Positions 3,701 through 24,700 of a DNA stretch of 34,144 nucleotides are shown here, piece after piece (position 1 is the stretch's first letter; each line of letters begins with the position of its first letter). Source of the stretch: Choristocarpus tenellus KU-1152 (Eukaryota; Protista; Phaeophyceae); contig CAXNAD020000055.1 of assembly GCA_964200185.2 (NCBI GenBank), positions 1 through 34,144 on the forward strand. The letters are read 5' to 3'. A model generated the notes under the pieces. That model searched no databases. It saw only the letters and a program-made list of their open reading frames with translations, and had not been told where the DNA came from. The position numbers and the translations under genes are program-made.

Positions 3701-6700
3701 GCATCCAACATTCCCTTCATCTCATCTCTCTCTTCCAGACATGTATCTCCTAAACCAACCACATGCATTCTGGACATAGATGGCATTGGAGGATCAGCTT
3801 TGGTTACACTTCTGAGGAAGAGCTGAAGCTCCACAATCGACTCCAAAGCACAGCGCATCCCCTGTAGCTGGAGATTGAGGGCTTGTTGCAGAGGCTTCTG
3901 AGGTGGAAGACCCTGTCCTGGAAACCCAAGCCCAGAAGTACTTTTCTTGACTTGTTCCTCAGAGGGAGAACTTATTCCGTCCGGAGCTGAATCCGGTTGG
4001 GGTATGTTAGATTGAAAGTTCAAGATGAGGGTATCAATTGCCTTTATTTCTGCAGAGAAGCTTGAAAGTTCCCTCTCCACTATCGTGACTGCACCACGTT
4101 GTTGAAGGACAAGAAGACCTAAGTGATCAGCCAAGCCACGCATGACCTGCAAAACAATTTGGTATTGTGTGTGATGTGTGAGACCTCAACTCTCAAGATG
4201 TATGTGGCACTGACCTGGACTGTGTACAATTCACAACATGTCCAGGGTTCCTCGACTGTTCTGCTTTCATTACCACATGTTTGGAGTTAGAAATTAAGGT
4301 TAAGAATCAATGACAAAATTAACACCAGAATAGGACCCAAGTTAATCAAGCATGGAGTTGCTAGGGTTAGGGTTGGCCAACGTACGTTCAAGCCCTATAA
4401 TTTCAATCTAGCACATGTTGCAGACCCCATGTCACCCAAAAAACAAGTAATTGTTACCTCTGCCTCTCTCCGTGTGATATCATGTGCCACAGGTGAGCTA
4501 GCCTCCAGCCTGAGGCGCATCACCTCTGACAAGGACTTGAGGTAGTAATAATCAGCACGTTTTGCAATTTCTCCAACAGCTTGCCGGGTCTGCATACATT
4601 ACAGTAAGAAAAGGCAAAGGTTGAGAAGCCCAATTTTATGTTGGGCACTCAGACATCTCATAATTATCCTCCAAGAGCTAAAGCATGTCATCAGAAAAAC
4701 AAAATAAACCTTTGACCTCACCTCATGAATATCATCACTATCACCGTTGAAACCACGGACAAGTACTTCAGGACCACAACCTGGCCCAGCAAGAAAGTCT
4801 TCCTGGAACGGAGTGAGTGACGTCATGACCTGAAGTATGTCTAACACCTCAACAGGTATAGCGGCCTTGGCATGACTTAGACCCTGCTTCTTTAATTCAC
4901 TCAGCAAGTCCAGAACTGCTCTTTTCTTGACCTGTTTCCCAACTGTCTTTTTTCGAAGTCGTTGAATTCTCCCAAAGACGGCCAAGCACATTTCTTCCGA
5001 TAGACCTGCACCCAAAAGCCCAGCTGGTCTTCCTGCTTCCGCCCAACCATCATCGTCCAATTGTTCCACAACCTTGGAACATCCATAAATACCCCTTCGA
5101 AGGAGCAATTTCATCTTATCAGAAAGGCCAGGCAATCGCATAATATATGGAGCAGCGCTTTCATCCTTTGATGCACCTTCCACAAACGCCTCCAAAATCC
5201 AACTTGGAATCGACTCAGAAAGATCACTATCTGGTAGATCAAAGCCGCGCCATCGCCTTACATATTCTTTCCAACTCCAACCAGGAAAGTCCACCTTGGA
5301 ATAAAACAAAGGCTCCTTCGGTAGGCACTCGTTGAGGGCTCTAAGAGATGAATGAGACACAATCGCTCCTTTCATTCCTTTCCTCTTGAGAGATAACTTT
5401 GTATTGCTTACGGGTTGTTGAAAGTCCCTAGATGAATTGAGGTGAACTGTAGAATCTTTCAATACATTTTCTGCACCTAGAACCATATTAGAATCACCTT
5501 CCTCCTTAGTCTCCGCATCATCCATAAAATCTTCTTCCGAGTCCACCTGGACAAAACAGTTACTGTTGGCATTATATTTTTCATATGTGGTTGTACATTT
5601 ACAATATGTTGACATACCTTTATACTCACAAGTTTGTACTATATTATATATTGATCATGCAACTCTGGGCTTTCAATTATGAGAAAAACCTTCAGACATT
5701 GAATTTATGGTCCCTTGGCAGTTACTTCTTTAACTACTAACGCATTATATAATATTATCAAGCTAGTGCAACTCAGGTATATCATGTCATACTGCTTATG
5801 TTCAACTTTATTCTTAAACGACTAAAAAAACTGTACGTGTTGCAATCGGTTTACAGAGTATTTTGAAGCTAACCATCAAAACAAAAAATAAATAAATAAA
5901 AACTATTCTATTTGACAATAGTTAAATAGGAACACATGTTTATGCCTACATTACAACATGTTTTCCACCTGTTACCTTTTTAACCATGCCAAACATAATG
6001 AAAAGGCTTGGAACATCGGTTGATGGACTTCCCATTCGAGTCCCTCCTGCTGAACCAGCTCTCTCCCCCACACCCTCAGTAATTGCTCCATGCAGAACTT
6101 CAGCAGACGAGACCTGAAAAAAAACTCAAAACAATGACCCACGCGGTTGGAAAATGGTTTAAAACCTTCACAGAGATCAATTTCAAAAGAACAACAAAAG
6201 ACAAGTACAGGCTACTCAGAACACACACTTACATTTAGTATGATGAGAGAAGAAAAGGTACAAAAAACACCCGTCTACAAATACAACAAGACAAACAAGA
6301 GTTTTAACCACATCAAACCTGAAACTTACACAATTTGCATTACCAATTCTGACCTCTCCACTTTCTACTTCACTGTGTTACGATGTTCCAAGATCAACAT
6401 TCCAAGCAAAGAAAGACTTTGCATCATTTTACCCACCTAGCGTTCCATCAAATACACACATCTGATTTATCCAATATTGCTGTTGGAATGTCAAAGGTAG
6501 TACGATACAACCAAGTTGGTGTCAAATTCTAAATATTTCGTCTGCGTTCAGCCCACAAGGGACATGCACTCAGTGTGACCACTGAATCTTTCCCATCCGG
6601 TTCCTATTGCAGACGTCCGTTTTATCTTTGCAGGTCTTGGCAGATAAATGCACCAGTCTGTAATTTGGTGGAGTTCTGTGGCAGATAGACCTGCATGTCG

Positions 6701-18700: not shown

Positions 18701-21700
18701 GCATTTACCAGTACTCCATCACACCACTGAAATGACGGTGACGACCTGCCCACTCCATGTCCCACATCAAAAGCAGATGAGCGGACAGCTGATGCCAACA
18801 ACCTCACATTGTGAACGCACCATTCCAGATTTAAAAGCTTGTTCTTGCGTGTACCATCTGCTTCACTGCTGGTGCCACGGTGTAAGTCTTTAAGGAATAC
18901 TGTCGCTGATTCAAGGGCACCTAAGAGCACCTCCACGGTCACAATTCCCTGGATCAGGGAACAACAGCACAGAAGTGGAATCACTAAAAGAAACCTGATT
19001 CATGCAAGTGAGAAATTCCTTCTAGCAGTCTGAGTGTTCCCGAAACAAATACGGGTTGAAAGTAATGATTGGGCAATCATACACAAGAAAATGTACACTA
19101 GATGTGGCTTAACATGTGCGGGTGCACATAAAGCAAACACATGCTGAGAAATGGATATTCTTGACATGTAATTTACACACCTTTACATCAAACCCGGACG
19201 TAGCTGAACATCCAATGCCTGCATCATGAGAGAGTGGAGAAATGTAGGATCTCCTGACAGCCTCCCACGCATCCCATGCACATCTCGTGAGTTGGGATGT
19301 TCTCACCTGCAACACCCAAAAAAACACAAGAGCAGATCATAGTGGGTCACAACATCTCATCACAATCATTACTATATCCCAATGACTTCAATATCACCAG
19401 AGAATGGATGTCAGAACATACAACTCAAAATAGAGGTTGCAATCCCATCTCAGTTAAACTGTGTTACTGTAACCTGTCTTATGCGCACATTGCTACTAAC
19501 AGAGAGTAAGGAAAAGTTTTCTTGACGATTTATCATCTTGCCACAAAATACGGTTTAAAGTTAGTTGAATATTAGGAGGGCTTACCTTTCTCTCTGCTTC
19601 AACAGCATTAGCAGGGACGCTCTCAGGAGACATCAAAAATAGACACACTTGCTCTGTTACTCCCTGGAGTTTTTGTCGCAACTCAGCATGCCTTGATCTG
19701 GAATCTACCTGTTGTATGATTATAAAAATTGACGCCACTTCAGAGTGTATGATGTTGGGATTCACAGAATCATCAGAAAGTCAAACAAAATTTTGGTCTT
19801 CCAGTATGACCATCAACATTCTATAGCAAACATGCTAGTCCAACAAGAATTCAAGCAAATGTAAGCATGACATCAAAGATCATGTCCATCATGACGACAA
19901 CTTTTCAGCTGCGTGACACGAACGTGTAAAAATGACATGCTCGCCCTCCTCAACAACAGTTTCACCCACACCTTTGCAGGAGTAAAGTTTACAAGTTTTG
20001 AAAAGGGATCGATTGAATTTTCCCTGGGTTTGACAACCACCAGGCCACGGGAAAAAGACCACGGCGGATAACACACCTGGGTGTCTGAGGCATAACACAA
20101 GAATCTCTACTTCGCCACCCATAACAACACATGTTAGAAAAAAATGAGGGGTTAAGGAGGTAACTGCAATTGCCTAATAGGGTAGGTAACACTTAAGTTT
20201 TTTGTGCAGCACAATATTATAAGCAACGAACTTTTCGAATTTCCAACGATCACAAGAGAAAGAACCAAAGGTTTTACAGGATGAGCAACTCTCGACATAA
20301 AAAGAGCACCTTAATCCTTTGTAAGGATTCTCACATAATGTTCATAAAAAAAAATTATCCAGAAGGAAAAACCCGGTCTTCTTTTGCACACTCTTATTCA
20401 CAGCAGAAATTAGTCTCCTTGTTCTTAACTCAACGGGATTTAGTCCTGTAAAATAATTACACCAATTACTGATAATGCATATTCTATGGCTGGGCTGTTT
20501 AGGAATATATCTATTACAGAAGTCAGAACCAGTCCTATTAATCCCATAAACAAGAATGAACCCAATCCTGTTAAATCCTTACCAGTGGAATAGCCGTATA
20601 GACTCATACCGCCAAACATAGCAGAGCATACAAAGAAAGTTCTAGCTATTGACGCTCCTGTATAAATTATACCCTAGTGCTGCCATTCTCAAAATTCACC
20701 CCCAAGTACATGCACCAGCCCAATGAGAAGTATTTGAAATTTTTCAAATCATTACGAACGAAATAGTAGCCACATGCCCATCTTGGGTGAAGTGTTAGTC
20801 TCTAGAGACTTGGAAATGACTAGAAGGAACACAAAAATTACACTTAAAATCATCCTGACCTCTACTGAGGTGTTGAGTTGATCATGTGCCAGATTCAACA
20901 TGATGGGTGAACTTAGCACTTTCATCTAAAACAAGAGGGAATGGTGATGAGCCTACATCGACCGTGGCGCAAGTTCCTTCAAATTATCAATTCATGCAAC
21001 ACAATGGATTTACATCTGCAAGTCACAAATATCTTACCTGCTCATAGCATCCAAGCAGCTCCGAAATGTCAGTGGCAGGTGACAGGGCGACCTCTCGCAA
21101 CACAGCCCCAACTCCTGTTGCCAATGATCGGACCAGTGATGTCTTCCCTGTACCACGGTGACCAACAATAAGACTTGGCCACCCCATATTAACACACCTG
21201 AAAGATAGGGTGAGGATGAGACTTTAACTTGCAACGAATCACCAAGTCCACACCTCATCTCTAAAGATCCATGTTTCTATTCTCAAGTTATATCATCTTG
21301 CTCAGCACAGCTCGGAAGACAATTAGCAATAGTTCGCACCAATAGTTCAAAAGCACACTGAACAAGACAACCCCATCGAATAGTTCAACAATAAACACCA
21401 ACATATTACCACTCAAAGTCACAGAAGAGCAAATCCCAGGTACAGTGTGTAACAAGGTCGACTTCCGCAAATGGCATGCGCTTTTTCCATTCACATCCTC
21501 GTAAGCTCTACTCTTATAGGCAAACAAACAAGAGATTTGGATGCTTTGATTGCACCAGCATTGATTGGTACCTCAGGCAGTCTGTCCAAATCAATAGGCA
21601 TTAGCCTCACTAGAACTTGATTAACCCACACAAGAGACCAGGTCAATGAACTGTGCCCATTCACCTTTTAAGGCACAGTCCAGGCATCACTGGCCATGTC

Positions 21701-24700
21701 GTAGGTCATCACCGACCCTGCTACCTTGGAAGATCTCCACCTGTCCTTGCTTAGTATCATCCTTACAAAGGAACCTCTCGTCGGCAGCACAAACACCCTA
21801 AAGTTTTATGCTTGCCAAAAAATAACACAGCAACAACACCAGCAACAACTTGACTGACCCCAGAGAGCAGAGTAGTCATTACAACCATTCAAGTTTCACA
21901 CCCTACTTGTATCAGGTATAATATTACGCCACAGTCAAATTTCTTACATATAACTGATCAAAGTCAAGACCAATGTAAGAAATTCAATGTGGCGTTATAG
22001 TACACACACTTCAACCACAGCTCAATATGTGAAAGGCACCACTAGCATACCCTTGACATTCTCAGCTGACAGCAGAAGCCCATCGTACTCACTACAATCA
22101 TTGTAACGAAAATGTGACCAACACACCACATACATCCCCAAAAGTAAACAAATTGGCATATTATATCAGTGCGTTCATTGTATCGTGTGATACTCAAAAA
22201 GACTAGAGACATGATAAGTTGCCAAAGAAAATATTTTTTTACCAACCTTGCAAGCGCCAGTAGCGGCCTCCTCAGGCCAACAGGAATGCGCATATTCCGA
22301 TCCAGTCCTCCACATTTCCCGTCCAACTCGTATCCAACAATTGGCATATTATAACCAGCAAATCCATGGCCCATAATCCAAGTTCCACGAGGCACCAGAA
22401 CCTCCCCAATCTGGATGTAGGTTGGGGTTACCCTTAGCTCTGGATTTGAGCACACCATTTCGGAGCAACTGCTGCCGGTCGCCTCTAGTGCAGAGGGCTC
22501 AAAACCGCAACCCTTATTAGAGGGTGTATTAGGAAATACTTCAAAAAATCTTGCTTGGACAGCTTCTCTATCTGACAGAGTCCGCATTCGCTGTACGTAA
22601 AGTGTGTCCAATGACCTCCTAGGTTCCCATCCTACTCCACCATTGGAGCCATTCGATCCTTCTACATTAACTCCTCTATCGTTTACACTTGAACGCATCG
22701 ATAATGTCAACGGAGAATTAGTACAATCAGGAACTCCCTGCTCACGAAGAATGAGAAGGCACCAGCGAAACACATCGCGCAGGTTGAACTCCCATGCCCC
22801 CCCTTTCTGTCCATACAAGCATTTTTCTGATGTATCTTCCTGAACCAGGCTATAAAATAATCAACGATGAGCATAACAAAAAACGAGGTGGAACTGTGTG
22901 AAGATGATAATATAAGTTATTGTATGAAACCCCGTGTTCAGCATAACACGTCTCCCTATGTAAAGGAGCATAGAACAAAATATGCTAGCATAATTCACAT
23001 ACTCAGGGCCATCAATGAAAGAGTAAAAGCAGTGTGTTACTCAGCTTGAATTGCATCCTTAAGACAAGTTTAATAAAAATGCAAGAAAACAATAGGAAGG
23101 AACCATGTCAAATCAACTCAACAACGGCATGTTACCATAAAAATGGAAGTTGATCAACCAGGCTCTGTTTCACCTGTTGAAACGAATCATTTTGGCCAAT
23201 AGTGAATTCTGCTTCTCATTCTGGGATGCTTCCTTGATTGCTTCACTTGTAGAACATTTTCCGGACGGAACATGCACTGCAGCCAGTTGGGGAAACTTGG
23301 CTTCAGCAATGTGTAGCAAATCCTCCGGGGTTAGAGCATCCACAAATACCTTATCACAAAAGGCAACAAAATATTGATCAAATGAATGAAAATTAATAAA
23401 CATCGAACTAAACACAATGTTAAGGACCTGTTCTCCATATTGATCGCATCTCTTCCTCCCAACAATAAAGTGAGTCAACGAATTTGGGTTCAAAATCCAT
23501 ATATGCTGTACAAGTGGGGTACCAGAATAAAATTTGCCACAACCCCATTTGTATTGTTCTTACCTTTGTGAATCGACTTAGAAATGACTTTGGAAGACCT
23601 TTCCTCCCCCCACCCTGACCCAAGGGGTTCTGTGCAGCGAATACTTTGAATGTTGGTGGGCAACGGAACGACTGTCCCAACTCCGGAATGTAGACTTCCT
23701 CACGATGATCCAGGCAAGAGTTTAATCCCTCCAGCACATTCTGGGCCATGAGACAATATTCAACGCAGACAGGGTAAACATTCAAAAAAACTATGTCCTG
23801 ATCGGTATACAACGAAAGAATATATCCTTTAGGCACGAATGTGATCTAAACAAAACAAAATATTACCGTCCGGACGAAACAGAGAATAGAGACAATCCGT
23901 AAGGATAATGAAATCGACTAACTCAAATAATTGTGTATTACCTGACTAGCGAGGTTTAGCTCATCAAGCAGCACCCAGCTTCCTTTCTTCAGGGCTTTCA
24001 GAAACATACCATCACACCAAGCAAACCGTGCCCCTCCACTTTCCCCACCACCACTCTCATCTCCACGCCCTCTCCCCTTCATGCCCTCAAAGAATTCCTC
24101 TTTGTCTGGTACTGGCAGATCAGAACCGAAAAGGTCTGAAACATCCGTTTGTTCCGATAGGTTGATACGAACAAGCTGTGAAGAATCCAAACGAGGAAAG
24201 ACCGACAACAATGACAAAAGTTATACCATGGAAAGACCAATGCTACAGGATTGCATGCCATGACACGTAAGAAATTACAAATCACACAAAAAAAACAATA
24301 CATGAACATATTTTCTCCTTAAACACAGCACCCTTATGGTAGTCACCTTCCTGAATCAAGAAGTCAACAGTGCCTACTTCAGTTATCACCGTTCACCTCA
24401 TGGCCAGAGGTCCTTGCTAACGCCTCAATCAAGCTTGTCTTTCCCACCCCAGGACTGCCCTCCAACAAAACAGCCTTCCTGAGCTGCAATGCTCGGAGAA
24501 CTCTCACTGCATTCAATCCTGTCGTTGCTGCTCCAAGAGAGAACCCAATGTCCTGGGTCCCGACATCTGGAAGAGGACGACCACCACATGGGGTCCAAAA
24601 GTCTCCTGAACCAAACAATGCTTGGGGGGCAACATGGTCTTCAACTGACAGTGGCTGTGATGCGGTGTGATAGCGAACACCAAATCGTAGAGACTTGCAC

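Follow-up and report, generated by a model that had tools for sequence, protein, structure and literature searches.

How does a piece of a bacterial gene come to lie in an intron of an algal nuclear gene, and what might it record of the bacterium that left it there? The question is raised by a contig of the brown alga Choristocarpus tenellus KU-1152 (assembly GCA_964200185.2, contig CAXNAD020000055.1, positions 1 to 34,144), which we analysed as a whole and call the window. On its minus strand, at 20436-20683, it holds 248 nt that resemble part of the bacterial Bax inhibitor-1 (BI-1)/YccA genes. A preliminary description, made from the sequence alone, had taken this stretch for a Rickettsiales-like gene fragment embedded in a nuclear intron and for a fossil of infection. 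Our analysis leads us to regard it as very probably a dead piece, of ~248 nt, of a Rickettsiaceae BI-1/YccA gene, derived from a paralogue carried on a mobile element and caught in an intron of the nuclear midasin gene. What we add to the preliminary description is the plasmid or mobile-element character of the donor gene, and a mobile BI-1 paralogue of Rickettsiaceae seems to be undescribed.

Results

All features of the locus described here lie on the minus strand. The extent of the fragment was set by comparison (blastn, tblastx) with metagenomic bacterial contigs, and its DNA is 88% identical over ~250 nt to six of them (L011-L014, L099 and L101). DNA homology runs from 20683 to ~20436, with a 3' end that could fall anywhere in 20430-20440, and tblastx found no further donor homology in the intron beyond the fragment. 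A longer homology, up to 20853, was suggested by a Pfam scan of the genome that read through four stops; we rejected it as hydrophobic noise, there being none past 20683 when DNA and tblastx comparisons were made with the donor contigs.

In a Pfam search the fragment matches PF01027 (Bax1-I) with an E-value of 3.6e-21 and a score of 76.3 bits, where 34.1 would pass the cut-off; the match extends over profile positions 90-161 of 207. When 1.84 billion proteins were searched exhaustively with phmmer, 2199 matches came back, the best of which was the 246-aa protein P0001 (93% identity over residues 118-192, E 1.5e-34). Protein identity to P0001 and P0309 is 94.6-96%, the top value representing 71/74 residues in members of neighbouring clusters. 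Full-length P0001 in turn matches the structure of Bacillus subtilis YetJ (4PGR) with an E-value of 5e-12. All close relatives of the fragment sit on gene-dense bacterial contigs, which stem from metagenomes of seawater, lakes and sediment. Judged by these scores, the likeness to bacterial Bax inhibitor-1/YccA is far beyond chance, and the gene of origin is bacterial rather than a eukaryotic TMBIM/GHITM gene, as the preliminary description had proposed. One might still think of a eukaryotic pseudogene derived from the host's own TMBIM/BI-1, given that a Bax1-I family gene exists on host contig C2350 (6269-6490 and 8347-8472; L006, L007). That gene, however, is intron-bearing and TMBIM6-like and not closely similar to the fragment, which at 93-96% identity to bacterial proteins falls inside a bacterial clade with 100/100 support (see below). 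These observations refute a host pseudogene, and we give it practically no credence.

The fragment corresponds to residues ~114-193 of its 246-aa bacterial relatives, with 74-80 of ~246 codons present and nt ~343-596 of the 741 nt of the donor gene covered. It stops short of both gene ends and holds no counterpart of the C-terminal part past the FTGL codons, where 50-odd residues of the relatives are missing. Being neither a full-length seven-helix protein nor intact in frame, it is not a working member of the Bax inhibitor-1/YccA family, and with 27 bits against the 353 of the NCBIfam YccA model it is not an equivalog of Escherichia coli YccA. What it does contain is a 77-codon open stretch (20443-20673, from the open reading frame (ORF) reading and Pfam), which spans roughly transmembrane helices TM4-TM6 of a protein with seven and has no proper start and a frameshift-induced stop at its end. 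This is the stretch of about 75 codons, cut at both ends, that had been noticed initially. Alignment with the donor genes reveals two lesions. At 20670-20676, one nucleotide inserted near 20670 combines with a G-to-A change to create an in-frame TAG (20676-20674), upstream of which four more codons of the donor frame can still be recognized. At 20450-20453, a run of four T stands where every donor gene has five, shifting the frame in the I-F-T-G-L codons, and homology stops within ~10 nt after this 1-nt deletion. The upstream stop and the deletion had both been read correctly from the letters, as had the prevalence of A/T-ending codons, which make up 71% of the fragment vs 58% of one large host exon.

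The surroundings of the fragment belong to a host gene. A midasin (MDN1-like) gene, recognized from the ORF list and Pfam, fills the contig (1-34144); it has many exons, one with a 1365-codon open stretch, and when the exons were searched one by one several matched the AAA_5 (dynein-type) and Midasin AAA lid domains of Pfam. Public contigs of three runs (X1, X2 and X3), all from one study, were placed on 19000-22000. A 12.4-kb spliced transcript contig of X3 skips 279 nt and then 1329 nt. The latter interval (19709-21037), whose GT..AG splice sites were read directly, is a spliceosomal intron that holds the fragment in sense orientation, and the distance from the start of the fragment to the 5' splice site is 354 nt. 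On the upstream side the transcript contig continues in an exon with an AAA P-loop (21038-21199; Pfam AAA_5, E 1.2e-5), and on the downstream side in another midasin exon (19586-19708), after which the next intron is skipped. The fragment is spliced out of the midasin mRNA, and its embedding in a nuclear intron, as first described, follows from the removal of these 1329 nt between two midasin exons.

A piece of coding sequence in sense orientation, with an open stretch of 77 codons preserved, invites the question of whether the host makes use of it, for instance for regulation from within the intron or as the source of a small RNA or micropeptide. The open frame is, however, explained by youth, it begins without a start codon, and the fragment and its flanks are not repeated elsewhere in the genome, in which the 1.1-kb surroundings are unique. 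X3 has no transcript contig on 20111-21019, though contigs cannot prove absence. Structured RNAs and tRNAs were also sought, and none was seen in the window: nothing in 1-34144 scores above the gathering threshold of any Rfam family. We see no sign of function because the fragment is spliced out, is matched by no X3 transcript contig and no Rfam family, and has a broken frame. It almost certainly does nothing for the cell, and use by the host seems to us extremely improbable.

Another concern is that contaminant bacterial reads were joined to a nuclear contig during assembly. A 21-kb contig of X1 is identical to the window over 19000-22000 and spans both junctions, but this best spanning contig may come from the very data behind the assembly. 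The second sample, run X2, is without a contig over 20393-20512, which also leaves room for an artefact. Yet a 415-nt X2 contig (20513-20927) reads across the right junction, covering 170 nt of the fragment and 244 nt beyond it with no differences, the flanks are midasin intron according to the spliced transcript, and many similar scraps lie in other host contigs. The piece is, moreover, merely 248 nt long and cut at both ends, and it carries two frame-breaking indels, unlike any live bacterial gene. We therefore consider an assembly artefact very unlikely. Continuity with host nuclear DNA is supported by the second sample at the right junction and more weakly at the left: the preliminary description had looked to reads across both junctions, and this held for the right one, whereas the left one has nothing beyond X1. 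An X2 contig ends at 20392 in 10 loose letters, which we considered as an empty-site allele and rejected, as neither flank of the fragment matches them. Judged by eye, they repeat in reverse complement a sequence ~60 nt away and are probably a contig-tip artefact. A look for carriage by repeats or transposons found only chance-level short repeats in the intron and no transposon features at the ends of the fragment.

Which bacteria did the gene come from? A careful IQ-TREE analysis was run on 64 rows of the one 246-aa gene. In it the fragment groups with P0001 and P0165 (support 98/98), inside a 22-row clade (100/97) that we call mobile-type and that includes copies from small contigs of Rickettsiaceae-family genomes. 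This clade joins 23 chromosomal copies of the Rickettsiaceae family and nothing else, giving 45 rows at 100/100, while other Rickettsiales (e.g. Ca. Bandiella) and other alphaproteobacteria fall outside. The Rickettsiales-like origin proposed initially is thereby sharpened to Rickettsiaceae, and the check by phylogeny that was to accompany it places the fragment well within bacteria. Naming and distribution were also surveyed. One sequence of the P0002/P0195 branch of the mobile-type clade, a branch ~70% identical to the fragment, is named 'Rickettsiaceae bacterium' by NCBI. BI-1 occurs at 43-62% identity in 124/130 genomes from the family of a metagenome-assembled genome (MAG) titled Rickettsiaceae. 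Three of the genomes (G061, G074 and G064) have two BI-1 paralogues, one of chromosomal type (57-59% to P0001) and one of mobile type (69-71%) on small contigs. Several truncated extra BI-1 copies were noticed in two others (G109 and G046). A pattern scan of named genome contigs with exact peptide words returned no relative above 53%, the best being MAGs of Rickettsiaceae, Rickettsiales and alphaproteobacteria. A donor in the Rickettsiaceae is well supported by the tree but not proven, because the tree is built on one short, mobile gene.

The mobile character of the donor gene emerges from its neighbours. Genes of the P0001 type lie in a row that runs TraD, (methylase), ProQ, a small ORF, HU, BI-1, a cold-shock protein, GapR, a resolvase, ParA and an SNF2 helicase, and within it the small-gene module ProQ / small ORF / HU / BI-1 / cold-shock / GapR is conserved on relaxase-bearing contigs (L011, L012, L099 and L101). 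A 53.6-kb contig also carries a 1634-aa MobA/MobL-helicase-Toprim relaxase (TraA). Three contigs (L099, L012 and L100) carry the donor-type BI-1 gene together with TraA (1634 aa), TraD, ProQ, HU, the cold-shock gene (CSD), GapR, resolvase and ParA. The P0002 type, 72-73% identical to the fragment, has as neighbours genes for a Tn3 transposase, a group II intron reverse transcriptase, PDDEXK and RNase T. Gene complements of this sort are those of a conjugative plasmid or of an element like the Rickettsiales amplified genetic element (RAGE). On the donor stretches examined, no F-type type IV secretion genes and no integrase-tRNA borders were seen.

The age of the insertion can be gauged from the pattern of differences. 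Relative to its nearest relative, L101, the fragment shows 24 differences in 222 nt (74 in-frame codons), distributed 4/0/20 over the three codon positions, with dN 0.024, dS 0.50 and dN/dS 0.05. None of the 74 second codon positions has changed, which puts a rough upper bound of ~4% on neutral decay. Almost all of the divergence is synonymous and therefore arose under selection in bacteria; decay since insertion has been small and the insertion is recent. To judge from this pattern, neutral decay since insertion would amount to at most a few substitutions and the two 1-nt indels. A fairly recent insertion is what had been proposed at the outset, and both the low dN/dS and the unchanged second positions speak for it.

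Is the fragment alone? A search for other inserts genome-wide, suggested along with the preliminary description, turned up further pieces both of BI-1 and of plasmid type. A BI-1 piece at C15105:773-1085 (L008) covers residues 14-118, is 72% identical to P0002 and has one TAA stop and one frameshift. Further decayed BI-1 pieces lie on C9618 at ~4940-5210 (L002 1430-1650), on C886 (L003 1504-1691) and on C8401 (L009 1498-1584). The C9618 piece most resembles a BI-1 copy from a Rickettsiaceae chromosome (80%), while the C15105 and C886 pieces are closest to the P0002 type. Second-codon-position differences reach 8-15% in the C15105, C9618 and C886 pieces; in the 62-nt C8401 piece there is 1/21. 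Such differences, together with their other closest relatives, indicate that the C15105, C9618 and C886 pieces are older than the midasin fragment, come from other donors, or both. On this comparison the present fragment is the youngest event seen of what appears to be a recurrent process. Two further observations concern the older pieces themselves. The C15105 piece sits in an island of 36-39% GC amid host DNA of 45-54% GC. Over the 77 nt in which they overlap, the C886 and C15105 pieces agree to 90%, yet they are only ~75% like any donor; they therefore have a shared source or arose by duplication.

Donor contigs were also used as DNA queries on the host genome. A stretch of 20 kb of L099 led to 9 nuclear loci and 15 kb of L105 to 6, so that 35 kb of plasmid-like donor DNA in total correspond to at least 13 nuclear scraps. 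These pieces of the donor neighbourhood measure 65-290 nt at 68-89% identity (C671:7756-7909, C24940:395-575, C1225:14043-14328, C113:1-260, C20511:1606-1795, C16285:907-971, C1621:1019-1105, C1364:3890-4133 and C5288:2143-2210) and include resolvase (89% on C671, 85% on C24940), the PDDEXK/Rpn-like gene (PDDEXK on five contigs), HU (C20511) and TraA (C1621). A TraA protein query found 8 pieces on 6 host contigs. A TraA relaxase piece with 61% identity and a 139-codon open frame lies at C2457:109-769 (L108), at the start of its contig. The first ~1 kb of C2457 has 31-39% GC, and the remainder is higher on average but uneven (38-46%). More TraA pieces were noticed on C3759, C974, C1078 and C19733. 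Altogether, more than 12 further contigs carry pieces of TraA, resolvase, HU and PDDEXK genes, and across the genome the scraps measure 65-340 nt. The query used for the donor element's SNF2 helicase brought up no piece in the host genome. A control query of 40 kb of chromosome, taken from a Rickettsiaceae genome with the mobile copy, recovered only the C9618 piece, along with what appear to be ordinary host homologues of ClpB and aminoacyl-tRNA synthetase. The contrast hints at an excess of mobile-element DNA among the scraps, confounded as it is by copy number and by the distance of the references to the true donor.

The genome around these scraps is that of an alga with chlorophyll c: it gives at least 60 matches to light-harvesting proteins, and the one that was read through is of the fucoxanthin/chlorophyll-c type.

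Discussion

The fragment in the midasin intron is bacterial in origin, broken in frame and little decayed. How did it get there? In the account that we favour, the source would be a BI-1 paralogue travelling on a conjugative plasmid or RAGE-like element, in a ProQ/HU/BI-1/cold-shock/GapR module beside a TraA/TraD relaxase, ParA and resolvase. DNA set free from intracellular bacteria would have reached the nucleus, where non-homologous end joining could have sealed a short piece into a broken chromosome. Neutral decay would since have added the two 1-nt indels and a few substitutions at most. The shortness of the piece, the arbitrary cut points in the gene, the lack of repeats or a transposon at its ends and the equally short lengths of the other scraps all fit passive capture by end joining. 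Under this account the alga itself would have been infected, and the fragment might well deserve the term fossil of infection that it was given initially.

It is also conceivable that the DNA came from Rickettsiaceae of other organisms that the alga ate or touched ('you are what you eat'), and not from an endosymbiont of its own. Mixotrophy is frequent among chlorophyll-c algae, metagenomes of seawater, lakes and sediment commonly contain close relatives of the donor gene, so that sources are plentiful, and the assembly holds no intact Rickettsiaceae BI-1. On the other hand, many scraps of differing age from related donors fit long, repeated and intimate contact, and bacteria in the cytoplasm have the shortest route to the nucleus. 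We consider an eaten or touched source decidedly unlikely. A bolder version of events starts from the apparent excess of mobile-element DNA. Here the nucleus would preferentially accumulate plasmid or RAGE-like DNA of Rickettsiaceae, delivered repeatedly and possibly by the element's own relaxase and type IV secretion (trans-kingdom conjugation) rather than by leakage on lysis. We find this unlikely too.

Several points weigh against the account of passive capture from a Rickettsiaceae endosymbiont of the alga. The left junction is bridged by X1 only, which may be the assembly's source, and all runs belong to one study. A single mobile gene can cross lineages, which weakens the placement at family level. 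With the nearest relative at a dS of ~0.5, the true donor would be a strain not yet sampled. A profile search of the genome contigs found no intact Rickettsiaceae BI-1 in the assembly, and a present-day infection is thus not supported. End joining, finally, is something we infer, because no empty-site allele was seen.

The locus and its companions matter in several ways. They document a physical flow of DNA from intracellular bacteria of the Rickettsia family into the nucleus of a chlorophyll-c alga. Coexisting pieces of different age and donor sub-lineage form a layered record of recurrent contact, and can serve as markers for dating infections and for tracing the symbiont lineages that a host has met. 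Scraps of this kind can also mislead contamination filters and screens for horizontal gene transfer. Lastly, they make it possible to ask whether mobile elements account for more than their share of the transfers from bacteria to eukaryotes.

Transfer of DNA from endosymbionts to the nucleus is already known from other hosts. Wolbachia inserts in arthropods and nematodes, and nuclear copies of mitochondrial and plastid DNA (NUMTs and NUPTs), are non-functional DNA in nuclear chromosomes, often short, intronic or intergenic, and decaying neutrally. Our fragment differs from Wolbachia inserts and NUMTs in donor family and host kingdom, and no large insert was seen here. RAGE and Rickettsia plasmids carry TraA_Ti/TraD_Ti, and the donor contigs resemble them in having a MobA/MobL-helicase-Toprim relaxase, TraD, ParA, a resolvase and transposases around BI-1. 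In the literature we found no report of comparable nuclear scraps in chlorophyll-c algae, although our coverage was incomplete and this is weak evidence of absence. The genome paper on Megaira, the type of algal symbiont first suggested as a candidate donor, mentions neither plasmids nor nuclear insertions. Ochrophyte algae are infected by Rickettsiaceae and have received DNA from them, as shown by Ca. Phycorickettsia and by the ebo operon in the plastids of eustigmatophytes, a transfer that has been taken as a sign of a long partnership (Yurchenko et al. 2018; PMC6092422). The ebo case concerns a functional operon in a plastid genome, and the term 'nuclear genome' is not used in that paper, whereas the midasin fragment is dead and lies in a nuclear intron. 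The case that comes closest is the rickettsial block in the nucleus of Volvox carteri, ~9 kb with four chromosomal genes, which was taken as the trace of a past infection and from which more than one donor lineage was inferred (2015; PMC4324946). As in Volvox, Rickettsiaceae DNA from more than one donor lineage lies in an algal nuclear genome. Unlike that green alga, however, the host here is a chlorophyll-c alga with light-harvesting proteins of the fucoxanthin/chlorophyll type, and its pieces are short and scattered and many of them plasmid-like, with the one described here lodged in an intron of an essential gene.

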